From: Haliotis rufescens
Taxonomy: Eukaryota
Direction: 5' to 3'
Length of the DNA: 64,000 nucleotides
Assembly: GCF_023055435.1 (NCBI RefSeq)
Contig: NW_025963868.1
Span: 6,944,001 to 7,008,000 of the forward strand
Part shown: piece by piece, positions 8,727 to 48,398 of the stretch
Position numbering within the stretch: position 1 is the first letter of the stretch
Layout: every line of letters starts with the position of its first letter
Made by a program: the position numbers and the translations under genes
Notes under the pieces: model-generated
What the model was told of the DNA's origin: nothing
The model's database searches: none
Seen by the model: only the letters and a program-made list of their open reading frames with translations

Positions 8727-11700
8727 TCAAACAATGACCTGTCCAAGGGCTACCATCATGATGAATGTCACGACAGGAATAGTGACCCTCCCTTCACCGG
8801 AGTGAAAGGGGAAAACCTGATCCTTGTCGACGCCCACACTGGCTTCTATACGGTATTGCAGGTATAAACCCTAGAGAAGAAAAGAACACAGCAAAATCAA
8901 AACAATATGTTAGTACACCCGACTACACCAGCCCAATAAACAGAGCAAATGCTGTGAAGAATAAGTAATTTTATAGGACGCCACCATCATCCACACCATG
9001 TTCATAGGAACACCACAGACATGGTGAGATATACGTTCTTCAACACGGTGCCAGTTTGACTATTAGACCAAAGAGCTGATGAAGACCATACGATTACGTA
9101 ATTGTAAACATTATTCGTGTGAAGATCATGTTCACTCTAAGGGAAAATATTAACACCTCTGCAACACAAAGCAAAATATTACCAAAGGTGAAAACTGTCA
9201 TGACGTGGATATATTTTCACTTGCAAACTTATACATTCATTTCTGGATTTGAACTAGTGAAAATAGTCGAAGAAACTAACCACCGTCGCTGATATTGCAT
9301 GTTTGTGCAAGAAGTAACGACTATTAGGGAATAATTGCTTCAGATGTTCCCTGTAAAAAGACAGACATACAATCCCATACCACTGATAGTCTACGCCACC
9401 GATGGTTTTGCTGATATATCACCACTCCACGCCTAAATGAAAATGACTGATGGCGTGCCATTGGAACGCTTGGAACCACTTCCACGCACGTCAATTCAAC
9501 GTCCACATTAATGGCGCCGTTAGCAACGGAACAGCTTTCTCAGAGACTGTATCGAAATGGCCGCCCGCCCATCATAGCCTCTCGCCAAGACATATGTATT
9601 CGTTTTACGCAGCTTCGACAAAGGTCCAGACGGTCAAAGCCCGTACCATACCTGGCAAAAGAGACGTATTAGAGGACAGTTCGACGACGTCTTCGCATCT
9701 ACAACATCCGTGCGAGATGCCTAGTCAGACATCAACGTCGACGTCTCCACTGTCGCAGAATACACGCAGTGGACAGCACGTCAGTCCAGCACGTTTCCTT
9801 CTCAATGTTAATGTGTTAACCATCCCCTGATTTGACACCAACCGAATACGTGTGGGGCGAAATGGACTGTCGTTTGCGACTTCTTCCAATTGCTCCAACA
9901 ACGTTGCAGGAACACCGGCTTATCATACCTCAGATTTTGAATGTCATTCCCCTGACAATTCTTCAACGTTTAATTGCTTCAGTGAAACGAAGCTTAAAGG
10001 TCAATGCACAAGATCGACACACTCACTACTGATGGTGTTGACTTGCCTCTGAAACCACTCGTTTGGCATGACCAACACACAGGTCAGGAAGAGCTTTCTT
10101 ATGGACCGTTGCTCATTACGGTAAATTTAGTCACTGTTCTTACCAAGTGCTAAAAGTGACAACATCATGTTAAGGCAACTTTGAGTATACATCACAAAGG
10201 ATGTACACACGCAACAAGAACTCTTGACAGAGCAACTCTACAAACAATAGTGTTAGAATGGGCATAAATAGTATGTGTCCCATTACTTAATAACTCGGTA
10301 GTTCATATGTCAACATTTTGTATACAACAATGTCAAATTTTGATCCTGAGTAATGTCATATATACGTTCAGAAAAGTATGGGAACGCCCACAGTTGAAAC
10401 AGACTTTTTCAGGCAGCTGTGTTCAAAACATATATGCGTGGATGCCAAAATGGCCTATATTTTACACAATAACAATGCATTTTTATCGAATCTGTTTTGA
10501 AAAAGAATGCTGGGCATTCCCATACTTTCATCATACCAGATTCGGGTTTTAGACAGTACGCAAATAATTCTCAAGGTTACAGAACTCACAGTGACGCCGT
10601 TCTGATCCCCACACCGATTGGCGGTCACGAACCACCCAGAGCTGCTGTCGATATCTATGTTGAAACGACCAACACAGTAGACGTAGTCTCCTTTGAACCG
10701 GTCGTAGCGGTTGTAACAGCCTGAGCTGGGTCTACTGGTGTCCAGGCTGAGAATCTGCCTGGAATAGGAGGGGTACTGAAGGAGGGCGATCTTCTGTTGA
10801 CATGACTGGAAGAAGGAAGGTTGGCGGTTTTACAAAACAAAACATCGTTAACTGGACATGTTGGATGACCTGGCAAGAAAGTGTTGTGTGTCAACAAATG
10901 TGTGCTCCTCCTATAATTGAACATAATGTGTGTTTGAAAATATATTTCGTCTCAAAAGAATATCATGAATGGCTGAGTTTGTAAGCTTTGCGTTGATCTT
11001 TATATACATTTTTCAGAGGTGGGACCATTTTTGTATTGTTAAGGATGACATATGAACTTATGGGTAAAAGAACAATGTTTGACTTCTACTTTCTCGGAAT
11101 GAATTTGTATTTCCTGACGTGGAGACTGAATAACATGGTCGGTCGCCACCGGTAACAGTATCGTACACGTGGTAACAGAGGTATACGTACCGCACTTGTC
11201 CTCTCTGCAAATACAAAGTATCCCCTATCATATACATGTACGGTTCCCTCTTTTCATACATTCATGTCTTAATGTCTTCCACACTTCTCTGTGTACAGTA
11301 CTCAATGTCTAAAACTAGTTCCTGAAGATGTATCCCATCTTTTAGACCGCTTCCGACTGTCCCAACTATGCTATGTACGTTTTCTTTATTATAGTATGCG
11401 AGTCCAATGTATTATATAGCAATACAATTGATATTAGGGATTTGCATATTTCCATAGATCTGATCACGGGAGACTCACTTTGAGAGGATCGTTGGCCTGA
11501 GCAAACTGTTCTCCACCATAGAACAGCAGAAACATAGGAGCGTATTGCTGTAAAACAAGGACATTGGAAACAACATTATAGTCAGTGGATCGTTTCTTTA
11601 TTCAATACCACTTACATGATGCTGATGCTTTTTATATTGTCATTTAAGCTTCCAAGAGTTATCAAGAATTGGAAATACTAAACGATAATGAGCTTTTTAT

Positions 11701-14700
11701 TTAGAGCGTAACTGATTTTGGACAAAAACTGTGCATGTCCAATATAGACCTACACTCAAAAGGAAAGTAACGATGATACATGTGTCTAATACTTATATAA
11801 AAAGTATTGATAATTACAATAATGATGCAGATGATGTGGTTTGTAGCTTTATGTATCATGTAACCAACCATGAAAACAACAAATCAATATCAGGGTGTTC
11901 TGATGTCCTTCTGGGGACACTATGTGATAAGGGACCTTTTACCCTACATGATCTGCATAATTTAAGAAATGAGCAAAACAAATTAGAAAGTTTTAAGAAA
12001 GTTTTCAGATATGAATAAGAACTATAGTTCGTTCATTTCAACACACGCGTGTTACGACACAAATTTATTACGTTTCGCTTAAATATGTTAAAAAGGTTTT
12101 CAAGATTATTTTTTTCAGAAACTGATATTTTTAGGTGATGTAACTAGTGAAGTGGTGAAAATAGACGAACTTGTTCAAGAAGTACATGTAATAGGCAGTT
12201 TTTGCCCAACCCTGTGTGAAGTCTAAAAGTACCATTATTACTAATAATTCCGTAGCTATATTTGTTGACGTACCGGATGTGCAGACAAAGAGTCCTAGTC
12301 CTTAGCCTACTTTTCACTTCAAATTGTGATGAATCTTTAATGGGAACAACACATTTCTCCATTACTCATTTATTTATTTAATTTAACATAATGAATGGCT
12401 GAATTTGAAATTTTACATTTACTGGGATTTAAATATTAAATTTTCATTCAAACCTTAATACATCTTATTGGGTCCATTGGTCAGTCCAACAACACAGATA
12501 TGGCTTACCCTTGTGCAGGCGAGGTTGTAACTGAAATAGGCTTTGATGTCCGTTGAGTGACTTACCTTTGGGTAGACGAGGCTATAACTGAAATGTGCCT
12601 TGTTGTCGGTTGAGTGACTTACCCTTGGGTAGACGAGGCTATAACTGAAATGTGCCTTGTTGTCGGTTGAGTTACTTACCCTTGGATAGACGAGGCTGTA
12701 ACTGAAAGTGGCCTTGATGTCAGTTGAGTGACTTACCCTTGGGTAGACGAGGTTGTAACTGAAATAGGCCTTGATGTCGGTTGAGTGACTTACCCTTGGG
12801 TAGACGAGGTTGTAACTGAAATTTGCCTTGTAGCCGGTTAAGTGACTTACCCTTGGGTAGACGAGGTTGTAACTGAAATAGACCTTGATGTCGGTTGAGT
12901 GACTTACCCTTGGGTAGACGAGGTTGTAACTGAAATAGGCCTTGATGTCGGTTGAGTGACTTACCCTTGGGTAGACGAGGTTGTAACTGAAATAGGCCTT
13001 GATGTCGGTTGAGTGACTTACCCTTGGGTAGACGAGGTTGTAACTGAAAGGGGCCTTGATGTCGGTTGAGTGACTTACCCTTGGGTAGACGAGGTTGTAA
13101 CTGAAATAGGCCTTGATGTCGGTTGAGTGACTTACCCTTGGGTAGACGAGGTTGTAACTGAAATTTGCCTTGTAGCCGGTTAAGTGACTTACCCTTGGGT
13201 AGACGAGGTTGTAACTGAAATAGACCTTGATGTCGGTTGAGTGACTTACCCTTGGGTAGACGAGGTTGTAACTGAAATAGGCCTTGATGTCGGTTGAGTG
13301 ACTTACCCTTGGGTAGACGAGGTTGTAACTGAAATGTGCCTTGATGTCGGTTGAGTGACTTACCCTTGGGTAGACGAGGTTGTAACTGAAAGGGGCCTTG
13401 ATGTCGGTTGAGTGACCTACCCTTGGGTAGACGAGGTTGTAACTGAAATGTGCCTTGATGTCGGTTGAGTGACTTACCCTTGGGTAGACGAGGTTGTAAC
13501 TGAAATGTGCCTTGATGTCGGTTGAGTGACTTACCCTTGGGTAGACGAGGTTGTAACTGAAAGGGGCCTTGATGTCGGTTGAGTGACTTACCCTTGGGTA
13601 GACGAGGTTGTAACTGAAAGGGGCCTTGATGTCGGTTGAGTGACTTACCCTTGGGTAGACGAGGTTGTAACTGAAATAGGCCTTGATGTCGGTTGAGTGA
13701 CTTACCCTTGGGTAGACGAGGTTGTAACTGAAATAGGCCTTGATGTCGGTTGAGTGACTTACCCTTGGGTAGACGAGGTTGTAACTGAAATGTGCCTTGT
13801 AGCCGGTTAAGTGTCTTACCCTTGGGTAGACGAGGTTGTAACTAAAAGGGGCCTTGATGTCGGTTGAGTGACTTACCCTTGGGTAGATGAGGTCGTAACT
13901 GATAGTGGCCTTGATGTCGGTTGAGTGACTTACCCTTGGGTAGACGAGGTTGTAACTGAAATAGGCCTTGATGTCGGTTGAGTGACTTACCCTTGGGTAG
14001 ACGAGGTTGTAACTGAAAGGGGCCTTGATGTCGGTTGAGTTACTTACCCTTGGATAGGAGATGTTGTAGGTGAATGAGGCACCGAGGCCGGCGGGGAAGA
14101 GGAAGCTGTCCATGAAGACCCAGCCCTGCGATAGACAATCACTGAACACTAATTATTAAAATAATGTCCCAAATCCAAAATTACTTTTTGAAGAAACGGT
14201 AGTACCGGGGGCGTTATCCCGTCGTTACATTACTGGACTCAACTAAACAGGATAATAATGGCGGACTGGCGAGGTCCACATTTAGTACGGTTGATAATAG
14301 AGATCCCACACAACCTATCAACAAGCCATTGCAGTTCCTGCTTGAAAACATTTACATGTAACAAAATGCATGGATTTTAGCCTCACTATTAGAATTCTGG
14401 TGGATTCCGAAAAGTGAATTTATTTGCCAAAAAAGTGTGATTCAGCTTTCGTTTTGGGTCTGAAAATGTTTCATTGGAATCTGCCTGAAAAAATGCAAGG
14501 GGGTTTGATTTATAGGACGCTGTGAACAGTGTCTCAGTTGATTGTGTCATCAGCCAGGCTCCAGCTTATCTCTCCACTCTGCTCCAGCTTCATAATCCAC
14601 CAAGAACTCTTCGATCAGCAAATCAAAACCTGCAACCTGTTCCTCAGTATAGACTTTCCAGCTATGGACTAAAGACTTTCAGTGTTGCTGCCCCGAAGTG

Positions 14701-15351
14701 ATGGAATGATCTTTCACTTGAGATTAGACTTTCGTCAACGTTTCAGACATTCAAAGCAAAACTAAAGACATTTGTACAAAAAAAAATTCCAGAGTGACAT
14801 TTGAATGTAGCGCTTTGAGCATGAACTACTACATGGAGGCTAGCGNNNNNNNNNNNNNNNNNNNNNNNNNNNNNNNNNNNNNNNNNNNNNNNNNNNNNNN
14901 NNNNNNNNNNNNNNNNNNNNNNNNNNNNNNNNNNNNNNNNNNNNNNNNNNNNNNNNNNNNNNNNNNNNNNNNNNNNNNNNNNNNNNNNNNNNNNNNGATG
15001 TCTAAAAGTTTGTAAATTCCCAGCGTTTATGATTTTAGTGACATCCAGCGCATAAAAAGAATCATAATTAATCTGATTCGAACCTATGAGCAGAGGCTCC
15101 TAGTACGCACATTTGCATGTAGACATGCAAAGGAACCACCTTTGTCCCCACGCCTGGAAAGGAACTGCGTGTTCTTCGAAAGGGCAGACTAATGCTAAAT
15201 TACCTGTCTTCAATATTGAAACAAATACCAATAATTTCAAAAGGGCAACACTCACCTTCAAAGAGACAATTGTTCCCTCTGCATATTTTCCTGATATAAT
15301 TGAGACGCAGGTCAGTATAGTACAAACAGATAGCAACCACATGCCCGCCAT
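8727..15351 (-). CDS. GOLD-like paralogue A: TMEM145/GPR180-type N-terminal ectodomain only, signal peptide and GPI-anchor-like tail, 200 aa
   Basis: Exons 15256-15351, 14048-14125, 11479-11547, 10590-10805, 8727-8870; all GT-AG, all phase 0. Protein: MAGMWLLSVCTILTCVSIISG-KYAEGTIVSLK/GWVFMDSFLFPAGLGASFTYNISYPR/QYAPMFLLFYGGEQFAQANDPLK/SCQQKIALLQYPSYSRQILSLDTSRPSSGCYNRYDRFKGDYVYCVGRFNIDIDSSSGWFVTANRCGDQNGVT/GLYLQYRIEASVGVDKDQVFPFHSGEGRVTIPVVTFIMMVALGQVIV*. Exons 3 and 4 (69 and 216 nt) are the same size in B and C. Confidence 0.88.
9440..10035 (+). mobile_element. Decayed Tc1-like transposase fragment in intron 4 of paralogue A
   Basis: Remnants ARQFNVH (HTH) and SPDLTPTEYVWGEMDCRLR...IPLTILQRLIASVKR...HTHY* (Tc1 SPDLNPIE..W motif and C-terminus), with deletions and frameshifts. 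Confidence 0.75.
12503..14047 (-). repeat. 57-bp tandem array (~27 units) derived from the 3' end of exon 2 plus its splice donor, in frame with the exon
   Basis: Minus-strand unit: gtaagtcactcaaccgacatcaaggcctatttcagttacaacctcgtctacccaagg. Its 3' part (FSYNLVYPR|gtaag) matches the exon end (FTYNISYPR|gtaag). ORF 12455-14149 stays open across the whole array. Confidence 0.95.
14545..14830 (+). mobile_element. L2/CR1-group LINE 3' fragment
   Basis: Reads QAPAYLSTLLQLHNPPRTLRSANQNL..VPQYRLSSYGLKTFSVAAPK.WNDL..EIR...F..FKAKLKTF, a typical L2 ORF2 C-terminus. Confidence 0.75.
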
Positions 15352-15457
15352 CTTCTTTCTCAATGTCACGATGTCACGATCAGACGATGCCTCCCACCTC
15401 CCACCGCTCGGCCCACATCCCCCACCTCCCGACCCCCACCCACCCCTACCCCTCCAC

Positions 15458-15511
<54 letters not shown>

Positions 15512-16929
15512 CGCAAAACCCAATTACGGATCGAACTGATGTCGCCCCAAGCCATTGCCGCGGTCCTGTTATCGGCTTGTTATGACACATACGATTATCT
15601 CGGTCGGGTGACATTGAACATCGAATCATACAATTTCTCATACAATTTACCCAATTATTTACGTCCTCCAGTGTGCACAACTCACCAACCTCCGTTTGGG
15701 AATAGGCCCCTTGTTTACAAATATAGGCCGACCCGTCACGATCCGGTGTAGAATTGGTCTTCAGCTACCCATGCTTGTTGTAAGAGGCGACTAACGGTAT
15801 TGGGTTGTCAGGCTCGCTGACTTGGTTGATGCATGTCATCGATCCCAATTGCGTGGATCGAAGCTCATGATGTCAATCACTTGATTGTCTGGTCCAGACT
15901 CGAGTATTTACAGACCGCCGTTATACAGCTGGAATATTACTGAGTACGGCTTGAAACAAACAAAAAATGAAAGAAAAAAAGGCATGTCAAATAAATAACC
16001 AGCAGGTCTTTTAACATTTTTTTTAGAATGCAAAGAGTAACTTGGATCTTATACAATGACAGGGGGCGGTTGGGTAGCCTAGTGGTTAAAGCATTCGCTC
16101 GTCACGCCGAAGACCCGGGTTCGATTCCCAACATGGGTACAATGTGTGAAGCCCATTTCTGGTGTACCCCGCCGTGATATTGCTGGAATATTGCTAAAAG
16201 CGGCGTAAATCAATACCCACTCACAATACACTGACAGGATCGCGTTAATAATTTATTTTGTTTTGACAACTTTTCACATTAGAGCATTATTTATAATTTA
16301 GCATCACCTTATTTGTGGAAATAACATGTTGTGCAATGCCGCAGACAGATCACAAAAAGGACGCCATCGGGCAAGGTGACCCGCTTTCATTGATGAATTG
16401 TAGTTTCTAGTTTCTACGTACCTTTCCTGTTTCTCGCCCCCGAAGCATGGTCCACTGACCACATATTTCATAAATATCATATTAGTGACATATTAGTTTT
16501 CTTAGGAAAAATAAAGCTCTGTATTTATGCCGCAAACACGTCGGTTTCGTAACCCACATTCACTCAAGCAGCGTTGAGCACCAGTGCGGCTGTTTACCCA
16601 CATTCATACGGCGCAGTGTATCAGAGCGGGTATTTGATAAAATAAAAGCGACAAAACCCTTCCGCATTCATCAGAAATCTCTACCGAAAACAGTATCGAT
16701 TGTATAATTCCGACTAAAGCATGAGCATACATGTGTTTATGAATCCACGTTCAAGCAGTGAAGTGTATCAGAGCGGGTGTTTAACCCACACTTAAGTAGA
16801 GTGTCAGAGAGGGATTAAAGAATTAATCCCACATTTTTGCAGCGCCGGGTATCAGAGTGGTTTGTTAACCCCCACTTAAGCCATGCAATGTGTCAGAGTG
16901 GTTTTTTATCCAACACTTACGTTGTCCAG

Positions 16930-23491: not shown

Positions 23492-23525
<34 letters not shown>

Positions 23526-31600: not shown

Positions 31601-34600
31601 TCACGAACAGTCTTTTCTTCTCAAACTATCGAACAGTCAGATGATGTTGGGTGTGTTTGGGGACTCGTTTTCATCCTGAATTCAGTATCCACTAGCCAAT
31701 GTATTAAAAGTTATTTACGATAAAAACATTCTTTCTTTCGATCAGCAGTTTACATAAGAGAACGCATGATGTAGCTGAAGATGATGTGGTTATTGGTTGC
31801 TGAAAGTTTGATCTTGCCCTCAGTGTTTGATGTGAGTGTGTGATTTGCACTTATAAACATTTAACAATCCATATACATGTATACACAAAATACACAATTT
31901 CACTATAATGATATATACAAACATTTTCCCAGATGGCATATATTATCATCGGTTTGGCCAAACCTACGTTATTGTTATTTGCTCTTCTAGAGGAAACAAA
32001 GGTCAATAAATTGTCTGTCCATTTTTGTCTCAGTCTTAGAGATATTTTCAAGAATTTCCGAAGTGCATACAGATATCATGCTGAAGTTTACCCCAAAGGT
32101 TGGTTGGTTGGTTTGTTGTTTAACGCCGCACTCAGCAATATTACAGCTATATGACGGCGGTCTGTAAATAATCGAGTCTGGACCAGACAATTAATCAGAC
32201 CAGTGATTAATGTCATGAGCATAGATCCACGCAATTGGGATCGATGACATGCATCAACCAAGTCAGCGAGCCTGACCACCCGATCCAGTTAGTCGCCTTT
32301 TACGACAAGCATAGTCACCTTTTACGGCAAGCATGGGTTGCTGAAGACCTATTCTACCCCGGATCTTCACGGGTCTTACCCCAAAGGAGAAATCCAGAAC
32401 AGAATAGGTTCAAGCTCAATTTGAGATCATGTACACTGCAGTAAAACAATCTCATGGATGTGAATACTCACCTTGCTTCCTTCGTTCGCCTGGAAGAACT
32501 GTTCTTGTTTGTAGAAAAGGAACTTCATGGGAGCATAGCTCTAAAAAGAAGGAAAGAAAAGTTTGAGAAGAATTAGTGTTATTTTTGTGGTGATATATCA
32601 TTCATAAGACACATGTCCTTGAAAAGGATTCATAATATAATATCCGTAGTCCTGGATTTCCCATGAACATTGATACTTCCCCCGTCGTTCTTGCTGTATA
32701 GGTACAGTGGTAGCTCCTTGGCCATATCTCGCGAAGTGATGAGTTGAGTTCAACGCCGCTTGAACAAAAGTCCAGTTACAACACGGCGTGTCAGCGTGAT
32801 GTGAGTGCAACCCACAAGCACGGGTATGGTCTTGTTAAACCTTGAAACATAATCAGTGTGACCTGACGGTTCTGGCGTGCCCAAGGGACGTTACTCTGCA
32901 CAGCGAGTTGCGGCACCCTTAGACAACAAACACCCACACACCCACCCCACCTACCCTTACCCCTACCCCTTCACCACCTCCACCCGTCCCAACGAAGGAA
33001 TCATCATCTGTGGCATATTGGACTGTCCATCCACCACACAACTGGTCAGTTTGACGCTTCAGCAACCCATGCTTGCCGTAAAGGGCGACTATGCTTGTCG
33101 TAAGAGGCGACTAACGGGATCGGGTGGTCAGACTCGCTGACTTGGTTGATGCATGTCATCGTATCCCAATTGCGTGGATCGATGCTCATGATATCAACCA
33201 CTGGATTGTCTGGTCTAGACTCGATTATTTACAGACCGCCGTCATGTAGCTTGAATATTGCTGAGTGCGGCGTTAAACAACAAACCAACCAACCCTATTG
33301 ATGACGTCTGGGGTATGACAGGGAAGGACGTCATAAGCCGCCGACCACGATGCGTTCTTACCCGAGGAAAGGTGATGTTGTAGTTGAAACGAACGTAGCC
33401 TGATTCGAACGTCCACGTGTCGATCAACTGCCATTCCTGGAAGGGAATAAAGTCACACATCAATTCTGTAATGTGAAGTTCACAAGATCTATACGTTTCC
33501 CATTGGACAAAATACCGGTCACCTGACCTTGAGAAGTTCACCTGAAACGTTCAAACCCATTGGAGGTTTTACGTTTTCCACACGATGGTATGGTATGGTA
33601 TACAAGACTGTAAACACAACCGAACACCTCACAACATCGTCGAACATGACCGAATCATGACAGGAAAAGATCATTGTTTGCGATCATTTAGAATCCTCGG
33701 CAGGATAAAGCCAACGGATAAAAACGATATCCGTTGGGGTCATATGCGGATAGAGATGCAAATATCAAAGGTCACGTAGGGACTACTTTCACTGTTTATA
33801 AACAAACACGGCGTCGCATTCGTCATTCGGCGATCGAGTCAGAATTAACCATCGGGAATCTGGATAAACTACAGGGATAATTGCTATCATTATCAAAAGA
33901 ACAGTCTAATATACTGAAAATCTGTGTCTAACTATGACGTAGCTAAGGCATTTTATAAGTTTTGGCAACTTTGGAGATATACATTTCGAAACAATTTGGC
34001 GAGGGCACGAGACCTAGCCAAGCGTGATCAGTAGCCATATCTGTGCTTGTAGACCTCTGCGGCTTGAAACCTCCTCCACAAATTAAAATAGTTGGATTTG
34101 GCCGAAATATGTTTGAATTGTTACCTTGTTTCGTTTTGTCGCTGTGTGTACATCTGACAACACTTCTTATCGTTATGACAGGACAGACCGACTGTCAACA
34201 ACGTCTGACCGTGGCCGTGACGTCTCATAGACTAGGGTTAGAGTAGTTTCCCTTTGACAAAGGGCAGTTACTCTAGCGGACAGACCGATGGATTACAGCG
34301 AAAGTGTATAAGAAACATATTTCAGTTGGAACTATATTGGCTACTGTCACTGTCCGACTGACACATCACTTACCCTGTGACGTAATAAATATTAATGCGC
34401 GCATTCCAGGAAAACTCGCAATGCTTCGGTAATGTTTGTGAGTGAGGGTAAAGCGATTTTGAAGCACAGAATTAAAGAATGACATTTTATGATAAAGAGG
34501 TTATCACGCTTGTGTGTTTGGGGATGGTATATATCCTGTATTAGGAATAAACACTATGTATTTAGCTCGCCAAGGCTCGCTAAATACAATGTTTATTCCT

Positions 34601-36043
34601 AATGCAGGATATTTACCATCCCCAAACACACTCGCGTGATAACCTCTATATATATACAATCAATACAATGTCAATACAATTGTGGTACATAGTATTCAAG
34701 AAGTGAACATCTTTTCATACATGTAAATTCTTGCCTGTAAAGTCAACGTACTGTATCTATATTATAAGATGCATATAACATGTACGCTCACTAGACTCGG
34801 TGATACATGTATGTATAGTGGTATCTAGTTTCAAAGCCTTGTGTTTGCATTAGGGTATAAAGAATACACTTATAGTTATGTTATTTATTACGAAATACAT
34901 CTATCGCCAATAAGCAATATTGGAGTGGACTCGATTCCGGTGAATCTTGCTTCAGTAAAGTAGTGCTTTATCATACGTAGTCCAGTGTTGATATATACAT
35001 AACAAAACATCATATAATTTCGTGCCGTGAAACTTTTGAAATCTTAACATTAAAGCAGGCACTTAATATAATTGCTTTATATAAACAATATCTCTCGTCA
35101 AGTTTTTTTATGACGCATTTTTATGAAGGGGGAAAAAGCTCTTGACCGCCTCCGTGGTCTAGTGGTAGAGCATCCGCCCGGAGAGCGGAAGTTCCGGGGT
35201 TCGATCCCCGGCCGCGTCATAACAAAAGGTCTTAAAAGATACTTGTTGTTACCCTGCTTGGCGCTCGGCATACAGGGGCAAAAACAAGGACTGGTCGGCT
35301 CGGAGTCAGTATACTGTGTCTGAGTGGGGTATTCATGTTTAACTGCAGCATGGTATCTCAGTGTGCTAGCACTATAAATCGGCATCAGTCCGAAATAGTA
35401 CAAGCAGCCACACACACACACACACATGTGCATGCACGTCGCTATATAAGTGCAATAATCTAGGACGTGACGTTAAACCCGATTTCACCTCACCTCAAGA
35501 TTTTTCGAACAAAGTATCTCCTTGACTCCCTATCTCAAAATATCCCTAAATGCTACCTACATCATTGTCATGTTACCATTACATAAAACATAAGACCTTC
35601 ATCATACTATTTGAGTAAAATTAACTTCCACACATAATTGTGTTTGTTTGTCTGTTGTTAAACGCCTGACTCAACAATATTCCAGCTATATGACGGCGGC
35701 CTGTAAATAATCGAGTCTGGACCAGATAATCCAATGTTTAACATCATGAGCATCGATCTACGCAACTGAGATACGATGACATGGATCAAACGAGTCAGCG
35801 AACCTTATCACTCGATCCCGTTAGTCGCCTCTTACGGCAAGCATGGGTTGCTGAAGACCTATTCTACCCCGGATCTTCTCGGGTCCCCCACATAATTAAT
35901 GTGTACACGGTGAACATCATTGAGATCTGCATGGTCATACTCACACTAGCTGTTTGAAGCCTCCGTTGAGCGACCTTGAAAGTAGCTGACGTGAAGGCTG
36001 ATAAAAAGAGGACACACAGAACGGAAAGAAAGACAGCTGCCAT
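28694..36043 (-). CDS. GOLD-like paralogue B, 204 aa, signal peptide and GPI-anchor-like tail
   Basis: Exons 35945-36043, 33362-33436, 32472-32540, 30043-30258, 28694-28849; all GT-AG, phase 0. Protein: MAAVFLSVLCVLFLSAFTSA-TFKVAQRRLQTAS/EWQLIDTWTFESGYVRFNYNITFPR/SYAPMKFLFYKQEQFFQANEGSK/TCDEKLSVLQFGATGQQILNLDVGMTQAGCMQRYDSTMGDSVTCNGRVTFNVDRGMMWYVVGNRCGTMNGIS/GMDVWFYIDNQGETEGETTRHPGFPTYSGQSKATFTAFTLIPFLVLKQCLA*. Confidence 0.9.
34495..34648. mobile_element. Near-perfect ~150-bp palindrome (hairpin element)
   Basis: agaggttatcacgcttgtgtgtttggggatggta...taccatccccaaacacactcgcgtgataacctct. Confidence 0.8.
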
Positions 36044-36093
36044 CTTGACGTTTCAAAGTTGATCCCGAAATGAGGCGTCTCCTACCAACCCGG

Positions 36094-36106: not shown

Positions 36107-38154
36107 AACCCTGAGACCAAACTGCACATCTTTTGTAAGATGTAACCGTGTTGTCACGTACAGCGAACATGCAGCTAATGACTAATTTGTACTTATGCAT
36201 GAGTGAGTTTGTGTCAAGTTGTTGTCAAGGAAATCATGCTGGGTAGGGGAAACCCAGTAATGGTGACAGTTTGTAGAATTGACAAAGCTGTCTCAGTCCA
36301 ATTAGATATAAACAAGCTTGTTATGTTTAATGGAGTAGATTTATGTTGTGTTCCCGAGAACCGATGTCAGTCAACCTAAGTAATTATTCAGTTGATATTT
36401 ACCAATATGTGACAACGTGTATGCTTCTACATGTTTGTTTGTTGTTTAAGGCCGCACGCAGCAATATTCCAACAATATGACGACGGTCTGTCAATAATCG
36501 AGTCTGGACCAGACAATCGAGTGATTGACATCACGAGCATGATCCACGCAACTGGGTTGGTTGGTTTGTTGTTTAACGCCGCACTCAGCAATATTCCAGC
36601 TATATGACGGCAGTCTGTAAATAATCGAGTCTGGACCAGACAATCCAGTGATTGACATCACGAGCATGATTCACATGCTTCAACCAAGTCAGCGAGCCTG
36701 ACCACCCGATCCCGTTAGTCGCCTTTTACGACGAGAAAAGTCGCCTTTTACGGCAAGCATGAGTTGCTGAAGACCTATTCTACCAATGATCTTCACAGGT
36801 GCCACTCACACGGGAATGCACGTTGCTATATACGTGCAACCCGATTTCAGCTCATCTCACTGTCTCTTATGGCCTGTAAATAACCGAGTCTTGACCTGAC
36901 AATCCAGTGACTGATATTATTTGCAACGCTGCACGCCTTTAGTATACAATGACTCGTTATCAGCCAGGTCGCAAAGCCTGACCGTCCTATCCTATCCTAC
37001 GACCAGAAATACATGGGGATCAATTGTGACCCGGACTCCCAACTGAGATTGACCTTATATCGACTGATTAAACACATTTAGTGACAATACGACTAGAGAG
37101 CATACACATGTGTTTGTTGTTGGTTGGTTTGTTGTTTTACGCCGCACTCAGCAATATTCCAGCTATATGACGGCGGTCTGTAAATAATCGAGTCTGGACC
37201 AGATAATAGAGTGATTAATATCATGAGCATCGATCCACGCAATTGGGATCGATGACATGCCTCAACCAAGTCAGCGAGTCTGACAACCCAATACCGTTAG
37301 TCGCCTCTTACAACAAGCATATGGGTAGCTGAAGACCAATTCTACACCGGATCGTGACGGGTCGGCCTATATTTGTAAACAAGGGTCCTATTCGCAACGG
37401 AGGTTGGTGAATTGTGCACACTGGAGGCCGTAAATAATTGGGTCTTCAGCAACCCATGCTTGCCGTAAAAGGCGACTATGCTTCTCTCGTTAGTTCGTAA
37501 TGTAATACAAACTTTATTCTAAACATTTCAGCATACATGCCAACTTTCAATGTATCTGACATTATCTAAAAACTTTAATTATTACATAACATTTAAAAGT
37601 CTAAAAATGGGACTAGGCTGAAAATGAGTTCAAATGTTTGATGTCATGTATCTCTGTAATAAATATAAGTTGAAGCTTATGTCTTTGCGGTCCTAGGATA
37701 CTGAAGTATTAAAATACAATAAGAAGTCATAATGAGATTTTTCACCTATAAGCTCCCTTAATGATGGTTGTTCACATATATTTTCCTGACTTAACCAAAA
37801 ACGATAACGACCAATAAAGTACAATCTGCCCGAACATGTAATATTTGATATAATTCAGTATCAAACATGTTTTCATTTTAACTATGCGGTGTGGCCCGGT
37901 GCTCACCGTTCATATACCTGGTCTTGAGGGCCGCGCGACCTTGTCCGTATTTTACCTGTTCGTCGGAAGTAGAGATTATCGTCGGTCACAATTTGAACGA
38001 AATTCTGAACACAGTCACGGGTTTTATATTCTTCCTTTGGCTCAATAACATGTCATTGCTGCGTTGTGGTCACAACTACTACAGCCATTTGCTACATTTG
38101 TATGGAGCCTGTTAAACTGAACGTTCTGTTCAGATTGAAATGTTACGTGCGGCA

Positions 38155-38570: not shown

Positions 38571-40499
38571 AGTGGACGAGGTCACTATAACTTTCCCACG
38601 CTATATCAGTGACAAAGAGTCCTTTCACACTCAACGCTAATATTGTTGCAGAAAATATCGACCTTGACTTGAAGATTTGAGCTGTTGTTTATTTGTTTTA
38701 TTTTATGTTTCTTGTACGCAATACACAGGACCAAAAGTGGTGATTTTCTGACTTGTGAACACGTTGTATATATATCGCAAATACAAATGCATTCAAAGTA
38801 AAGTTTGGCGGCAGTTGACAGGCTACTTTAACCTTCCCCCGTTCTATTAGTAACAAAGAGTCCTTTCATACTCAACACTAAAGATAACTAAATCCAAGAG
38901 GAACAGACCTTGCAAAGACGATATATTTTAACAAAGATGTACATGCAATTGTGTGTCCGTATATCCAAAGACCCGTGAAGATCCGGGGTAGAATAGGGCT
39001 TCAGCAACCCATGCTTGCCGTAAAAGGCGACTAACGAGATCGGGTGGTCAGCTCGCTGACTTGGTTGATGCAGGTCATCGATCCCAATTGCATGGATCGA
39101 TGCTCATGATATCAATCACTGGATTGTCCGATCCAGACTCGATTATTTACAGACCGCCGTCATATAGCTGGAATATTGCTGAGTGCGGCGTAAAACAACA
39201 AACAAACAAACCAACCGTATACCCAAAGAAGGACAAATTACATTTGAAATTTGGTTTGGGTATTTATTGAGGTTATCAATTGCTTTATTGAGAAGGGTCA
39301 TCATATTCTGAACCAATTGACCGTGTTAATGGAAAATAGGTAAAGGTTTACAGACTTTGTAAAACTGAGAATTGAAATCAAGGTACGTTGTGAAAATGAC
39401 AGTTTCAGTCAGCTACTTACTAGATTATGTGATTATTGCTGGAGAGTGGTATCAAATGAAATAATTAAATATGTCTTTAATTTTACTCCTTCACTCTCAT
39501 CACCATTATACAATGTATAACACAATGTTGACCTGACGTTTTAGTCATCGTTTTGGCAGCATTATCTGTGTAAGTGTTCTTACAGTTACGTATTAATCAG
39601 GGACATAGGGTAGCCTGGTGGTTGAGGCGTTCGCTCGTCACGATGAAATTCTGGGTTCGATGTTCCACATGGATAGTGTTTTCAACACTAACAGTGTTAC
39701 TCGTTTTAATTATTCTGAAATGTCAGGCATAAAGTCTGGGTCTCTGACACACCGCTGGGGGCGGTCGGGTAGCCTAGTGGCTAAAGCGTTCGCTCATCAC
39801 GCCGAAGACCCGGGTTCGAATCCCGACATGGGTATAATATGTGAAGCCCATTTCTGGTGTCCCCCGCCGTGATATTGCTAGAATATTCCTAAAAGCGGCG
39901 CAAAACCATACTCACTCACTCACTCACTCACACACACATTGTTCGGCTTTCTAGGTGTATCAATTAATTTGCTTTTCAGAAAGTCTGAGGTCAATTAGTT
40001 GTTGTAGATACGATTACGTTATCAACTGATTATTTGAATGCAGTCCATAATATTTGTCATGACTTTTTGACCTGCCTTTCGCCCTTAATGTATTGACAAC
40101 TTTAAATATTACAAATAAAAAAATGTTTCACAATAATCTGTAAATGTCACTGCTTCCGATGCCTAGGGAAGATAAACAATTTTTAGATATCAGGTTCCGC
40201 CCTGATGTGAGTGTCTAATTAGTTGTTTCAATCAGAGGTGGTTACTGTGAGTTAAAAAGCTGATCGAACAATCCAGATGGTGGCATGTTATGTAAGCAAC
40301 TTGGGTCCCCATGACCATCCTTGTCTGTTACCAACTGGTGTGAAAGACATTCATGTTCAGCATTTCGTCAAACACCCCGCTCCTTCAGCGTTTCAGAGTC
40401 ATGAGTGTAGAATTATTATTATCCCTTCTCATTGTTTAATTTTATATGTCCTGTTTAACGCTGCATTCAGCAATATTCCAGCTGTAGGACGGCGGTATA

Positions 40500-40677
40500 T
40501 ACAGTAAACTACGGTTAAATCGAACTCAAAGGGACCACTAACTTTAGTTTGTTATAACCGTAGTTCGTTATAACCATATATACAGCATAACTATAGCAAA
40601 TAGTCGGGACAAAAAAAAAGTTCGTTATATCCGTCAGTTCGTTATAAGCGTGTTCGTTATAAACGTACTTTACTGTA
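40500..40677. mobile_element. Tc1/mariner-pogo-type MITE (TA-CAGT...ACTG-TA)
   Basis: TIR cagtaaactacggtt / aacgtactttactg, inserted into a SINE B. A second copy lies at 48111-48290. Confidence 0.85.
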
Positions 40678-43143
40678 TATATATATTATTTATATAATAG
40701 GGTCTGGACCAGACAATCCAGCGATTTACATCATGATCGTCGCTCTACACAATTGGAATACGACGACATGAATCCACCACGTCAGCGATTCAGACCACAC
40801 GTTCCCGTTTGTCGCCACATTTACAACAAAAACATGTGTTTCTGAAGACTATTTGTCAGCCGGTTCTTCTCGGGTCAGAAACCGCGTAGGATTACTATGC
40901 CACATGTAGAGTGAACTGTCTAATTTATCACATGAGATTACGTGACGTGCAGCCAATGGTTGTATACAAAAACGACAACAGTTCGAAACATAAACCCCCA
41001 TCCAATCTTATAAGGAACGAAAGGCAATAGTTTGCAAACATATCGATGTTTTGATTTTATTAAAGTCATGCCTTTATTGCATCGACAAAACTATCTCTTA
41101 CTGGATAATGCGTTTCACCTTTTTCAAACAAGATGTGCATTCATCAAATCTTGTCAGGATGGACAGTTAGGGACTCTACTAGCCCTGTCCATGTTGTAGA
41201 CGATCTACATTTTGTCTTGCATCTCCTGGTCCGTTTAACACTGTCTTTGTAGTAGCCATACAATTGTACGTGAAACATGTTCAAATATGGGCAGGTAAAT
41301 AACACTAAACAGTTTCTCTGACGTACATTGAGATAACAGAAGTATCGCTCACACGTCGTGTATGTATAATATAGAAGTTGTTGTCCATAATACTCCTTCT
41401 GATGAACTTATTAAGTGCACCAACTACTTTCATATAATAAATACGGTTGAACTGTCCTTTACCGAACCAATGTTTCAGTTATTGCTTCCATATACCTACA
41501 CGTTTTTGTATGTGAGTGAATGTTGTTTTAAGTCCAAGTCAGCAATACTTCAGCTTCACACAGCCTCTGACAAACCGTGAAATCAAATCAGATTCGAGTA
41601 TTTGGGTGTATCGTGCAGTCCTCTAAATATTCAGAAGCTGACAAACCAGGGATTGATTAAAGGATCATGGTGTCATCATCACTATCACTTGTACGTCTTT
41701 GAAAAAGATGTGACTGTTGAAATCATGGACTGCATTGGAATAATCGATCAATTGGCAACTTTATCGTATCTACAACAATTAATTTACCTCAGACTTTCTG
41801 TAAAGCAACTCAGTTGATAACCCAGAACACCGAACGATGTGAAATGGGGACATCATGTGCGAGAGACCCATACGTTATGCTTGTCGCAAAAGTCGTTGAA
41901 AATGATCAGGTGGTCATGATATGTTCATGCTATCAACCACTGGTTTACCTTGATCTAGCATGCTCATTTAGAAATTGTAGTTATTTGCGGACTGTGAAAC
42001 AGCATTAACTTCATTCACCATAATGATCAACGACCCTCCCTTTCAAGATACAGAAACACACTCAGTCATCACCACAAATGAAGCAAACGGAACCGGACAC
42101 GTATTAGAACCCAAACTTGTGTCGTTTATTGAACGGGACGTGCTGAAACATATATTTCATTTCAAATACAGATACACAAATACAATGTTACAGGAATCTC
42201 TTAGAATTATGTTTGTCTCTTTATTTAGGAGTGTGTGTATGCAACGAAAAGAGACGAAGGGCTGTGTATATATACTAAAAACTGTTAAGGACAGATCAGC
42301 TACAGATGGTCCTTAAAAAGTATATGTATGTCAGTGCAAACCAATTCGAAGTATTTGAATATGTCCAGTGCAATAATCACTTGATAAGCATCATGGTCCA
42401 TAACTATGACAAATGTTAACACAGATAGGATAATTGTGAATTTTTTTATTGCTCAAAAACTATTAATTGTGAACATTCGTGATGAACATAGACGAACATT
42501 CAAACACGAATGTACATCATTGGCTATGCCGTTCAGCAGTCAGTCGCCATAGTAATGGTAACGTCACACTGCAAATACTAAACACACGAATGAAGGCAGG
42601 CCAATGTGCAACAAACTAGTCATACGCAGTTTCAAATCCAGGTCAAATTGAGGTTGTTTGAAGTCAAGTTCCGGGGACAGGTCCTTTGCAGCTATAGAAA
42701 CATCCTACATATCGCCTTCTAAACTTCCCTTGGTTAAGGGTATGCACAATCTGATTGTAAAACTGAATAGCACAGACATAGATACCAAATAATTATTACT
42801 GATGTGTACAGAACAAAAGCGACACTGATAGGAATTACAAATACAAATACATTGTGTAAATGACATTACTAACTAACAGTAGTTTGTAATGATCGGATAC
42901 ATATGAATACAGATAGTAGTAGTTAAAAAATTAACGATTAAGAGCTGACGCATATAGATGTAGATTTTCATGGGTCGAACAAGTCTGAGATAAAGATATT
43001 TTTATCTAACATGTTTTGTCATATTCAATTGATTGCTTTGAAGAAGTTCATATTTTAGCTTTCGAATGACAGTCGATACGTAGGACGTTTATATAACTTT
43101 CTTATATTTCTTGAAGGTGGCATACCAGACCAGGTGCCATGTC

Positions 43144-46100
43144 TTACGCCAGGCATTGTCTAAGAACAAGGAATGGAACTAAGGTCAAGGCCGTGAACGT
43201 GGCTTTTGATTGGCCCGAGTACATCGGGAAGCGAGGGTTGTTGGTCGTCTCCCCCATGTTGTCGATGTAGTACCACATGTCCATGCCCTGCAGAGGGAGA
43301 GGAAGACGTTCAAGCATGTTTCAGAATGTTCAATATCAAGCGTGGGAAGTCAGATAGTGCTCTATTAGGCGTTATTTAAGTTACTTGCTATTTACATCCC
43401 ACAAACCAACATCCTACAAACGTAAAGTAAATTGAATTGAATTGAAAACAGTTGTTTTCCCCAATTAGTCTGTAAACTGACGTCAAACAAAAACGCCACA
43501 GAAGGGAACTGTAGGATGCGACGTCACCCTATACAGTCATGCCCCGCTTATACGGACTTCAGATATCCGGAAACCTCGGTTCCCGGACGATTTTCATTCA
43601 AAACGAAATAATTACTATATAAATTTACCCGTATTTCCGGAAATTCAGTTTCCGGAACCGGACAGTCATTTTCATACACAAAACACTGAAATGCACACAA
43701 AATTGTCTCACATATCCGGACAATACACTTCCGCTGTTGGTAATCCTTTAATTCGTGAGAAGTCAATTAACCAAGTGACACTGAGTTACGTTTGAGACGA
43801 GCTTGTTTATTGTACATGTAATCCCCTTCGATAAATATGGCGTCTGTGGAGGTCAGGTCAAAGTTGTGTAAGTATGTATATGTTCATTCATAATTATAGG
43901 TTTGTTTTAAATGCACGGGGATAATGATGTTCTTATGGAATCTTCTTAAAAATATTTCTGAATGTTGTTTTCATTTCATTTCGACCATCGAACATGCGTT
44001 TTAGCACCAAAACATCTTGATACATATTTTGACATTTCAGGGACCAACATCCAGGAATAGTTCGATGAGGATGGGTTAATACACCCACAAGCATGGAACG
44101 GTGAACGGATTGCCAGATTAATGTTTCTCACATCCATCATGTCATAGACTATTTGGTAGCCACAAAACACAACGATGCATAATATGTTAAGAAAAGTGAT
44201 CCACCCATCAAATTTAACTATTTCTACAAATTTAGAAGAAATAATAATTCCTCAGCTTCATAAAGGTCCTGAAAGACTGGTATTATATCCCCGTCCTTTA
44301 GAGTCAATGTATATCTTTCAACAAATGACGCAGTTGCACATTTGATAGGAGATTTGCGAGAACATCTTTTTGACACAAAAATACTGATATTTATTGATTC
44401 GTTCTTACCCGAGGAAAGGTGATGTTGAAGTTGAAGCGAAAATAGCCTGATTCGAACGTCCACGAGTCGTTTTAGCACCAAAACATCTTGATACATATTT
44501 TGACATTTCAGGGACCAACATCCAGGAATAGTTCGATGAGGATGAGGATGGGTTAATACACCCACAAGCATGGAACGGTGAACGGATTGCCAGATTAATG
44601 TGTCTCACATCCATCATGTCATAGACTATTTTGTAGCCACAAAACACAACGATGCATAATATTTTAAGAAAAGTGACATGCACTTTTCGTTAGAAGAACC
44701 TGATAAAATACTATAAAAGTGTGATACGTACCGAAATTCCGTTCATTGTGCCACATCTGTTGGCCACCACGTACCACATCATACCACGATCGACGTTGAA
44801 GGTAACGCGGCCGTTACAGGTGACGCTGTCCCCCATGGTGGAGTCGTAACGCTGCATACAGCCGGCTTGGGTCATTCCAACGTCAAGGTTCAGGATTTGC
44901 TGACCGGTGGCGCCGAATTGTAGAACAGACAACTTCTCGTCGCAAGACTGTGAAAAAGCAAACATACATGTACATATGTGAGTGTGTTGGGTTTAACACC
45001 GATTTGAGCAGTATCAGCTTGATGTGGGAGGAACGCCCAAGGTGATGCATGTTCTAACTGTAAACACTTTGTGTGGGCCTCTGGTACGTTGATGACAAAC
45101 CTTAATCATGCAGGGGATGAACGGAGATTCGAATCCACTATCATAGTTTCTGACACGCCGTGATATAACTTTAATACTGTTAAAAGCGGCGTTAAACCCA
45201 ACTCACTCACTCACTGTACAAGGAAAGGAGCCACCCATGCCCCAGCAAACATAATCAGTGATATTAGTTTGAGCTTTGTGGTATTTATATAATTGTTTCC
45301 CTTAATAGCTCTGTACGTTATATTCGATCATCTGTCTTTAAAGGTAACACATTGTACCACCTGATATGTCACGTGACCACTAAAAGGTCCGGCTTTAGAA
45401 AAAACAAATATAACAATATTTCCCATCAACTCTGTGTGAGGGAGACTTTCTCAAAGTTCAATTGGTGAGGTGTATATTTGGAATCATCATTTTGAACACT
45501 AAACTGAGAGGACAAACACATTGTATTTTAATGTGTACAGCCAATAAGGTGTTGTTCGTATATATACCATTGGCTTACATTGCATTTAATAGTGCTTCAA
45601 TAAACATCATCTACCCGTACACTCAGCTCATTGCAAATTCACCAAAGTTGTTTTCGTTTAAAACTCATTTCTGAATTTTCATTTGTAATTATTTTTGCAG
45701 TCATATAAAATATAGATAATATATTGTTCTCAATAATTAGGGACCGTAAATGTCGTCTTAATTGATAAATTTGATAAAATTGATTTACATTCAGCGTAAA
45801 GAAATATATCTACAAGAGGGATGACTCTGCTTTCGAATATTAATTTTGCAAACACCTGGTATCATCATAAAGATGATGGTGACTCATAAACACATGCTTA
45901 TGATATTGTCGGAATCGTACAATGGACTTATTTCTAATGGTTATAGAAAAGGTTACATCACTGTGCTGGACACGTATTAACAATAGGTTTGGTGACGAAT
46001 TCCCATGATATGTCATCACATCTATGATCTGAAGACAACGGCTGTTCAACTATCAACTATTTGGCTCACGACGTTACTCAACAAAATAAGTAATAAAAAC

Positions 46101-46368
46101 ATTCTTTCAGGTAGGGACAGGATAGATATATAATACACCTGAAAATACTTCTCCTCTTCAGACCGCCTCCGTGGTTCGATCCCCGGACGCGTCATACCAA
46201 AATACGTTTAAAGATGGTACTTGCGCTCGGCATTAGGGGCTAAAACAAGGACTGGTCGGCTCGGAGTCAGTATACTGTGTCTGAGTGGGGTATTCATATT
46301 AAACTGCGGCATGGTATCTCAGTGAGCTAGCACTATAACTCGGCATCAGTCCGGACTAGTACAAGCAA

Positions 46369-46433
<65 letters not shown>

Positions 46434-48398
46434 CATGTACGTCGCTATATAAATGCAATAATCTTGGACGCGACGTTAAACCAAATTTCACCTCACCTCA
46501 CCTCTTCATTTTTTAATGTCCCAAAGTCCATTTCTGGTGTCCCCGCCGCCCATTACTGCTGAAATATTGCTAAATTCGGCGTTCAACCCAACTCACTCAC
46601 TCACCCACTATGATCTCCCTCACCTTGGAACCTTCGTTAGCCTGGAAGTACTGGTCCTGTTTGTAGAAGAGAAGCTTCATGGGGGAATAACTCTGGAAGA
46701 AGAGAGAAATCTTTCACAGCCGTCACAAACACATCTCTGTTGAAGACAGTCTTATATCGATGACTGACGTTTCGGTAAAGATGCTTTTGCCTTTATCAAA
46801 AGGATTCATCCATTAGTTTATTCATAACTAAAATATTAACTTCAATGATACCAGTGATGTATCAAATTTAACTATTTCTACAAATTTAGAAGAAATAATA
46901 ATTCCTCAGCTTCATAAATGTCCTGAAAGAGTGGTATTATATCCCCGTCCTTTAGAGTCAATGTATATCTTTCAACAAATGACGCAGTTGCACATTTGAT
47001 AGGATATTTGCGAGAACATCTTTGACACAAAAATACTGATATTTATTGATGCGTTCTTACCCGAGGAAAGGTGATATTGAAGTTGAAGCGAACGTAGCCT
47101 GATTCGAACGTCCACGAGTCGATCAACTGCCATTCCTGGAAGGAACATAATGTTTTTATACGTTACAGATGTATTACTTTAAAAGTTTTAATTTACTTCG
47201 TATGTGAATATTGCAAATGTTGTACATGTATAACATATTGGAACACTTTACGAAACAATACGAAAATAGTTATAACTAATATTTGAACGCCAAATGTTTT
47301 TTTGTCATTTCTGTCATGTAAGGTTGAAGTAAAATATATTTGTTTGTTGCTTAACTCCTCACTCAGCAATATTCCAGCTATTTTACAGCTGTCTGTAAAT
47401 AATCCGGAGCACCCAATCCGGTGATTGATATCATGAGCATCGATCCACGCACTTTGGATACAATGACATGCATCAAACAAGCTGCTGAAGACCCATTCTA
47501 AGCCGGATCGTCAAGGGTATGAAGACAAAGGGTATAGAGAAATTTAAAAAAATGTCAATGTGTTAATAAATTCGAAAAATAGAGTGGGGAAGAATAGGAA
47601 AATGTGAATATGTCAGACTTGGTGACGTGTATATTGCCCCATTCATAATATAATACGTAGGGCAGGGCTGGCCCCGTCGTCGAAGGCGCCGCGACTCGCT
47701 GTGCGTCCCTTGGGCACGCCAGAAACCTATGGTTGTGGGTTCGAATCCTGGTTCGCCCAGATTATGTTTCTAGGTTTGTCAGCACCATACCCGTGCTCGT
47801 GGGTTTCACCGAAGCGGTACACGTCAGAGACCTGCATCACTTCGAGCTTTCCTCCCACATTAAGCTGACACGCCGCGATATAACTGGAATATTGTTAAAA
47901 GCGGCGTTAAACACAACTCACTCTCTAGTATAATACCTAAAGCATTGGTTTGTATGGTCCAGACTGCATTACTTACAAGCGGCCGGTATATCGTTCGAAT
48001 ATTGCTGAGCGCGGCTTTGTACCCATGCGGGGAATCAAACCAAGGTATTCGGCATGACGAGTGAAGGCTTTAATCTACCCCAACGGCCCGTATCAATGAT
48101 AAAATACAATTACAGTAAACTACGGTTATAACGAACTCAAAGGGACCACTTTTTTGAGTTCGTTATAACCGTAGTTCGTTATAAGCATATATACAGCATA
48201 TAAACAACAAATGGCCGGGACTAAAAAATGAGTTCGTTATATCAGTCGGTTTGTTATAAGCGTGTTCGTTATAACCGTAGTTTATGGTATACTTACATTA
48301 GATGTTTGAAGCCTCCTCTGGGCGACTTTGAAGGTAGCTGAAGTGTAGGACGAGAACACAAAGACGACGCATAGCACGGAAAGGAACGTGGCGGCCAT
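43144..48398 (-). CDS. GOLD-like paralogue C, 201 aa, signal peptide and GPI-anchor-like tail
   Basis: Exons 48297-48398, 47061-47135, 46624-46692, 44732-44947, 43144-43287; all GT-AG, phase 0. Protein: MAATFLSVLCVVFVFSSYTSA-TFKVAQRRLQTSN/EWQLIDSWTFESGYVRFNFNITFPR/SYSPMKLLFYKQDQYFQANEGSK/SCDEKLSV...VVANRCGTMNGIS/GMDMWYYIDNMGETTNNPRFPMYSGQSKATFTALTLVPFLVLRQCLA*. Confidence 0.9.
43997..44676. repeat. ~200-bp direct duplication flanking an ectopic copy of the exon-2 3' end and intron 2 of paralogue C
   Basis: 43997-44199 matches 44468-44676. The insert 44208-44468 matches 46860-47121. Confidence 0.85.
48111..48290. mobile_element. Second copy of the TA-CAGT MITE, abutting the exon-1 donor of paralogue C
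   Basis: Homologous to 40500-40677 and ends immediately beside acttac (48291-48296). Confidence 0.85.

Follow-up and report, generated by a model that had tools for sequence, protein, structure and literature searches.

Three abalone genes for a stand-alone TMEM145-type N-terminal domain with a putative GPI-attachment tail

A stretch of 64,000 nucleotides from the red abalone Haliotis rufescens (NCBI RefSeq assembly GCF_023055435.1, contig NW_025963868.1, positions 6,944,001 to 7,008,000 of the forward strand; hereafter the window, numbered from its first letter) carries a tandem cluster of three minus-strand genes of five exons each, referred to here as A (8727–15351), B (28694–36043) and C (43144–48398). 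Their products of 200, 204 and 201 amino acids, respectively, are members of the TMEM145_N domain family and lack the seven-transmembrane (7TM) region that accompanies this domain in canonical TMEM145 (PF21892 + PF10192). The best explanation overall, to which we assign a probability of about 0.6, is a stand-alone GOLD-type domain, duplicated at the DNA level from a TMEM145-like gene and ending in a tail of the glycosylphosphatidylinositol (GPI) type. The trio is real, small and confined to abalone; it is already annotated, albeit undescribed and unstudied, and a literature search returned nothing on these LOC and XP loci, on Haliotis combined with TMEM145, on PF21892 or on the ‘GPR180-like N-terminal domain’.

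Gene structure and domain identity

Gene models were built from tblastn searches of exon peptides against the window, in which each of the five exons had three minus-strand copies, and from reading of the DNA. All 15 exons proved intact with consensus splice sites, every intron of the three genes has GT..AG borders and phase 0, and the limits of the cluster, 8727 and 48398, correspond to the stop codon of gene A and the ATG of gene C. The exon translations are identical, from first to last residue, to the H. rufescens RefSeq products of LOC124149676 (isoform X1, P0068) for gene A, LOC124149719 (P0005) for gene B and LOC124149718 (P0069) for gene C, all of which bear the name ‘uncharacterized protein’ with a precomputed PF21892 assignment. 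Three intact five-exon genes, as proposed in an earlier sequence-only reading of this DNA, were thus recovered at the same positions, tiling three RefSeq proteins.

Exon 1 of gene A (15256–15351, ATG at 15351) encodes 32 residues with a hydrophobic, signal-like N-terminus, ends in KYAEGTIVSLK and equals residues 1–32 of P0068. It is followed by exon 2 (14048–14125; 26 residues ending in FTYNISYPR, which includes an N-glycosylation sequon, with the same limits as a 75-nt exon of the canonical 7TM gene), exon 3 (11479–11547; 23 residues), exon 4 (10590–10805; 216 nt, 72 residues, four cysteines) and exon 5 (8727–8870; 47 residues and a TGA stop codon), the last reading GLYLQY.., FPFHSG and then the hydrophobic end IPVVTFIMMVALGQVIV. 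Gene B comprises exons at 35945–36043 (33 residues), 33362–33436 (25 residues, with an NIT sequon), 32472–32540 (23 residues), 30043–30258 (216 nt) and 28694–28849 (51 residues and a stop codon, with FPTYSG and a hydrophobic end), and gene C comprises exons at 48297–48398 (34 residues), 47061–47135, 46624–46692, 44732–44947 (216 nt) and 42900–43287, the coding part of the latter being 43144–43287 including the stop codon. The N-termini of all three products are hydrophobic, with mean Kyte-Doolittle values over nine residues of up to 2.4–3.2, and in the structural model described below the domain starts at around residue 22. The N-glycosylation site that had been noted as conserved lies at the end of exon 2, reading N-I-S in A and N-I-T in B and C.

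The window has a guanine plus cytosine content of 41% and two gaps of undetermined bases (4885–5047 and 14846–14996). The second of these is non-coding, as it falls between exons 1 and 2 inside intron 1 of gene A, and the reading frame of that gene is therefore unaffected. The order and orientation of the sequence on either side of it are supported by the exon 1/exon 2 junction (..SLK|GWVF..), which recurs in A-type orthologues of H. cracherodii, H. rubra and H. asinina (P0008, P0002 and P0006) from independent assemblies.

Assignment to the TMEM145_N family rests on profile, fold and cysteine pattern. The PF21892 profile has 131 positions and a gathering cut-off of 28.1 bits; full-length records matched it with 68.9 bits over profile positions 4–128 (P0001, 99% identical to gene B) and with 59.3 bits over positions 2–128 (P0002, A type). 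When exon 4 was taken alone, B and C still exceeded the cut-off (34.0 and 35.1 bits, respectively), and A scored 26.1 bits. The four cysteines of the 216-nt exon, C83, C111, C125 and C146, are present as had been claimed, and are invariant both within the family and across a 34-sequence alignment that adds 28 other TMEM145_N proteins, single-pass and canonical-type members among them. An AlphaFold2 model of P0005 built from that alignment (mean predicted local distance difference test score 72.6) has a beta sandwich at residues 22–165, disorder at 166–190 and a helix at 190–203. Foldseek had the GPR180 N-terminal domain (9FOW) among its best hits for this model, but only weakly (E = 6e-3) and alongside C1q, Eph and DeCLIC sandwiches, and the match to the GPR180-type fold was then settled by VIA-align, so that the predicted structure agrees with the GOLD-like beta sandwich of the GPR180/TMEM145 N-terminal domain. 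The motif-by-motif resemblance to the TMEM145 N-terminus that the sequence-only reading had described was thereby borne out by profile and predicted fold alike.

GPR180 itself was reached by fold comparison only: neither exon 4 nor the A-type protein gave a match in a sequence search of the PDB, and the identity between the abalone proteins, represented by a predicted model, and the N-terminal domain of the GPR180 crystal structure (9FOW; PMC11605061) is 14%. In GPR180, the domain sits on a 7TM body and the protein is found in intracellular vesicles, while the abalone proteins have no 7TM. Proteins of the p24/TMED group also differ: they combine a coiled coil with a TM helix and a COPI/COPII-binding cytosolic tail, an architecture that A, B and C do not share, and there is no sequence similarity between the two groups.

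Absence of a 7TM region and origin from a TMEM145-like gene

In GOST proteins, the GOLD domain is described as directly followed by the 7TM region (PMC12716839). The products of A, B and C end after 200–204 residues at a stop codon in the terminal exon, and, lacking the defining 7TM, they fall outside the GOST proteins. A search of the 1.33-Gb genome for PF10192 (GPR180-TMEM145_TM) located matches at C90:9.93 Mb, C223:52.11 Mb and C605:40.57 Mb only, with none in the window or within ~2.9 Mb of it.

Transcript evidence was obtained from RNA contigs of four runs belonging to two studies, aligned to the gene C region (5,701 letters). The runs carry no library record, and contigs lacking introns show their complementary DNA content. 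All four predicted introns of gene C were seen as GT..AG joints (43286/44731, 44947/46624, 46692/47061 and 47134/48296), a single 508-nt contig spans exons 1–4, and contigs extend beyond the ATG of exon 1 to 48408–48431. Contigs that begin with the end of exon 4 cross exon 5 unspliced, pass the stop codon at 43146–43144 and reach 42900 and beyond, giving at least 244 nt of contiguous 3′ untranslated region; in X3 record 16 and X4 record 21, the unspliced part covers 42900/42998–43288 and the loose end is the end of exon 4 of gene C. At 44946, runs X1 and X2 have loose ends whose sequence joins the end of gene B exon 3 to exon 4 of that gene, which indicates that gene B is spliced and expressed too. 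The word depth of contigs was very high in two runs, depth being a poor measure. Expression as anticipated is therefore documented by spliced contigs in four runs and two studies for C and by one junction for B, and the claim that transcripts end after exon 5 held for gene C, from whose contigs this evidence comes.

These data bear directly on the possibility that A, B and C are the 5′ parts of ordinary GOST genes, wrongly modelled as complete, with 7TM exons further downstream. Nothing but the usual context of the domain speaks for such a reading. It is, however, already contradicted by the RNA contigs that cross the stop-bearing exon unspliced for at least 244 nt, by the lack of any PF10192 match in the window or within ~2.9 Mb, and by RefSeq models that end at the same point in four Haliotis species, and we consider it scarcely credible. 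The absence of a 7TM in the three genes, as originally proposed, consequently stands on both the genomic search and the RNA.

Two plus-strand open reading frames in the window (23906–24784 and 59808–60497) encode proteins with multiple transmembrane segments, and were considered as the detached 7TM half of a ‘split GOST’. They are paralogues, 52% identical to each other, of a family with at least 20 members in the genome, mostly clustered on contig C235. This candidate was rejected, as neither has a Pfam match and their paralogues have no GOLD gene beside them.

A full-length canonical gene, for which the sequence-only reading had asked, lies on the same chromosome at a distance of ~3 Mb (C90:9.93–9.965 Mb), its N-domain being encoded in exons at C90:9964510 and 9952640 and its 7TM in exons at 9932828 and 9931878. 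Its exon limits match those of the cluster. The 75-nt exon NWEFLG..FMYPV begins a single residue ahead of the conserved W and stops one residue past Y-P, exactly as exon 2 of the abalone trio does, and the N-domain exon after it, of 216 nt, begins a single residue ahead of the first cysteine, as exon 4 does. The following canonical exon, VEGMKLEY..TYEFSADEF, can be aligned gap-free with gene A exon 5 (GLYLQY..FPFHSGEG), which places the S of FPxxSG opposite that of FSADE; the canonical exon then closes at a GTAAGT donor (FSADEF|gt). In pairwise comparisons, exon 4 is 33–37% identical to the canonical gene, 26–30% to a single-pass paralogue considered below and 22–23% to a separate N-domain exon at C90:14.19 Mb.

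The abalone genes thus share with canonical TMEM145 the domain over its whole profile, the four cysteines, the limits of the 75-nt and 216-nt exons, exon 5 up to FSADEF and the chromosome; they differ from it in having neither the 7TM nor the cytosolic part and in ending with a hydrophobic tail of 14–17 residues. Since homology to the canonical gene stops precisely at the exon 5 donor, this tail begins where the parent has intron 5. It is likely that A, B and C are partial duplicates of a TMEM145-like gene. Judging from the exon structure, the first five exons of such a GOST gene would have been duplicated at the DNA level to give the three, with a new coding end and stop codon recruited past the old donor, probably from intronic or other new sequence. 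The tail sequence is too diverged to be traced to its source. The exon record is a clean example of a multi-pass receptor gene yielding a gene for a putatively surface-tethered ectodomain, with the new end placed at an old donor site.

The C-terminal tail, selection and divergence

The C-termini of all three proteins have the layout first described from the letters alone: FPxxSG, then a short spacer, then a hydrophobic stretch, here 14–17 residues long, with nothing after it. GPI signals have small residues at the omega and omega+2 positions, followed by a polar spacer, and close with a hydrophobic stretch that no cytosolic residues follow. If G of the invariant S-G is taken as omega, then omega+2 is S in B and C and G in A, followed by six moderately polar residues and then by ~14 hydrophobic residues up to the end; the 15–25 residues before the S-G site are predicted to be disordered in the AlphaFold2 model. 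We therefore somewhat favour the interpretation of the tail as a GPI-attachment signal with omega at S-G, a prediction made from sequence features, according to which the mature product would be a lipid-anchored GOLD domain at the cell surface.

An unlikely alternative is that the hydrophobic end serves as a true membrane anchor, giving a type I protein without a cytosolic tail, possibly retained in the endoplasmic reticulum or Golgi by its short transmembrane segment, in the manner of other GOLD cargo receptors. The predicted helix at residues 190–203, the 17 uncharged residues in the tail of gene A and the preservation of the tail sequence across species are all consistent with this, as is the fact that GOLD proteins (p24/TMED and most GOST) act in the early secretory pathway (PMC9711517; PMC11605061). 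B and C, however, have only ~12 hydrophobic residues before K/R-Q, which is short for spanning a bilayer, and there is neither a positively charged stop-transfer flank nor a cytosolic sorting motif. The combination of small residues, spacer and hydrophobic end moreover resembles known GPI signals.

More doubtful still is secretion of the proteins as soluble GOLD domains, acting as diffusible binders or decoys, with a weak hydrophobic end that is shed or fails to anchor. The tail hydrophobicity of B and C is indeed modest, and the very high word depth of contigs in two runs is of a kind often seen for secreted products, although depth is a poor measure. Nevertheless, retention of a hydrophobic C-terminus in three paralogues and four species argues for its use, and no dibasic or other obvious cleavage site precedes the tail.

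The distribution of the genes was followed through cluster look-ups, which showed A, B and C types in each of H. rufescens, H. cracherodii, H. rubra and H. asinina, with open frames kept, located on one contig per species (and under consecutive accessions in H. cracherodii) and with RefSeq models ending at the same place. Word-based protein searches with P0002 and P0005 returned Haliotis proteins only, with no relatives outside the genus. A HMMER profile of exon 4, run against 1.84 billion representative sequences, recovered only the two clusters of this family, a canonical-like fragment (P0004) and a spurious repeat protein (P0003), albeit a profile of 72 positions needs ~35 bits at that database size, so that distant or independently derived short forms could escape it. 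In the genome, the only coding match to P0005 and P0008 outside the window was one of 25% to the single-pass gene of contig C46. The ‘expanded family’ of the sequence-only reading is consequently real, but amounts to just three genes plus one dead copy of exon 2.

Comparison of the paralogues B and C in the window gave a ratio of non-synonymous to synonymous divergence (dN/dS) of 0.18. Silent-site divergence between them is uneven, being 0.04–0.13 in exons 2 and 4 and 0.4–0.6 (pS, the proportion of silent sites that differ) in exons 1, 3 and 5. The near identity of exons 2 (33362–33436/47061–47135) and 4 (30043–30258/44732–44947), extending even to silent sites, suggests patchy gene conversion between the two genes.

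An array of about 28 copies of a 57-nt unit (12504–14068, minus strand) occupies intron 2 of gene A, each unit joining the 27 nt at the 3′ end of exon 2 to a GTAAGT donor and a further 24 nt of intron. The donor is kept in 25 of 28 units and each unit is open in the frame of exon 2, its copies reading FSYNLVYPR without the N-I-S sequon of the real exon. The long open frame means little by itself, as a unit of 19 codons is expected to be free of stops by chance in ~40% of cases. In RefSeq isoform X1, as in all three orthologues, the first donor is used and no repeat is included; isoform X2 (P0067, 174 residues) skips exon 2 altogether. A dead copy of exon 2 (44409–44480, minus strand; 75% identity in tblastn, one in-frame stop) is present in intron 4 of gene C. 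It sits in a direct duplication of ~470 bp around 43976–44683, and one RNA-run contig is without one copy of that repeat (joint 43996/44468).

Both the 1.6-kb donor-site array with its annotated exon-2-skipping isoform and the dead exon-2 copy inside gene C might be expected if the three genes were truncated TMEM145 duplicates, transcribed and functionless, that are now decaying; they are, after all, partial copies of a longer gene and diverge faster than the single-pass paralogue. Against decay stand the 15 intact exons with consensus splice sites, the dN/dS of 0.18, the open frames of three types in four species, the invariant cysteines and sequon, and the abundance of spliced RNA, and we judge it very improbable.

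Several observations weigh against a functional, GPI-anchored domain, to which we nonetheless give preference. At 74–86% (80% for the A type and 82–86% for the C type, H. rufescens versus H. asinina or H. rubra; 81% for B), identity between abalone species is lower than the 96% of the single-pass paralogue in the same species, and this faster divergence could mean relaxed constraint. The omega-site reasoning draws on general rules for GPI signals, and the S-G motif was inherited from the FSADE linker of the parent, so its conservation may have a cause other than an omega site. Conservation of the tail across species is fairly high, more than a cleaved signal strictly needs, and in B and C it carries K/R-Q four residues from the end. 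Finally, gene A has an annotated isoform that lacks exon 2, and the RNA evidence covers only gene C and the exon 3/exon 4 junction of B.

A very large tandem array of 45-nt units, ~6 kb long (window positions 52022–58097, plus strand), reads CLYIHDAIADVFRLH in one frame and is located upstream of the second of the multi-transmembrane genes; open reading frames of up to 1769 residues in this interval are a by-product of the repeat. A very abundant SINE-like (short interspersed element-like) repeat of ~200 bp, one frame of which reads ..GLSGPDSIIYRPPSYSWNIAECGVKQQTN.., dominates self-comparisons of introns and intergenic sequence, with copies at, for example, 15770–15975, 27526–27780, 29016–29264, 32088–32279, 36491–36667, 37093–37269, 39061–39270 and 49150–49355.

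Single-pass relatives and possible function

The single-pass paralogue is encoded on the plus strand at C46:30587373–30588566. Its 397-residue product (e.g. XP_046368219, P0072) matches TMEM145_N with 120 bits over an intronless N-domain, and has a signal peptide, one transmembrane helix of 23 residues and a cytosolic tail of ~190 residues with a conserved PPPPY and a C-terminal, PDZ-ligand-like ETSA. Relatives were found in gastropods, bivalves, cephalopods and a chiton (55 hits, all uncharacterized and with PF21892 only, none having a 7TM Pfam domain), and carry the automatic UniProt name ‘GPR180-like N-terminal domain-containing protein’. As with A, B and C, these are uncharacterized proteins in which TMEM145_N occurs without a 7TM; they differ from the trio in possessing a real transmembrane segment and a long cytosolic tail, in their intronless N-domain, in their occurrence throughout molluscs, in their 96% identity between abalone species and in being only 25% identical to A, B and C. 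A further TMEM145_N exon with the same 5′ exon limit was detected at C90:14190761–14190976 (minus strand, 54 bits), with no PF10192 exon detected nearby.

The existence of a mollusc-wide single-pass family shows that the TMEM145_N domain is not tied to a 7TM. The 7TM-free TMEM145 ectodomain that had been presented as unusual does lack the 7TM, but is less singular than it had appeared. What is new here is a third architecture, consisting of the domain only with a GPI-type end, plus a clear record of its origin. The scope of the finding is limited to three genes in one genus, and the domain also occurs in the single-pass family.

Possible roles can be considered by analogy with better-known proteins. 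A TMEM145 construct without its 7TM still binds stereocilin (PMC12789471), and WLS binds Wnt partly via its GOLD domain (PMC9711517). By analogy with TMEM145 and stereocilin, the abalone domain would hold a secreted or matrix partner via its GOLD face at the cell surface, where it could tether, present or sequester that partner; without the 7TM cavity, WLS-type chaperoning of lipidated cargo would not be expected. The co-receptor or decoy role suggested for the proteins is best regarded as a hypothesis of this kind. In a more specific version, which we put forward as speculative and on balance improbable, they would be GPI-anchored autonomous GOLD receptors, a natural ‘7TM deletion’ of TMEM145 that competes or cooperates with canonical TMEM145 for the same extracellular partner, which might be, to give an example only, a stereocilin/mesothelin-like or collagen-like matrix protein.

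In at least four abalone species, a GOLD domain of the TMEM145 branch has been kept alone, with a lipid-anchor-like tail and under purifying selection, and its retention in this form lends support to the view that the domain can bind partners unaided. The abalone genes also provide small soluble-domain proteins that could be used in ligand fishing. Should the autonomous-receptor version hold, the fast divergence between abalone species would reflect co-evolution with a partner, and the GOLD domain of the TMEM145/GPR180 branch would be a self-sufficient ligand-binding module, with the abalone genes offering a tractable handle on its ligands.

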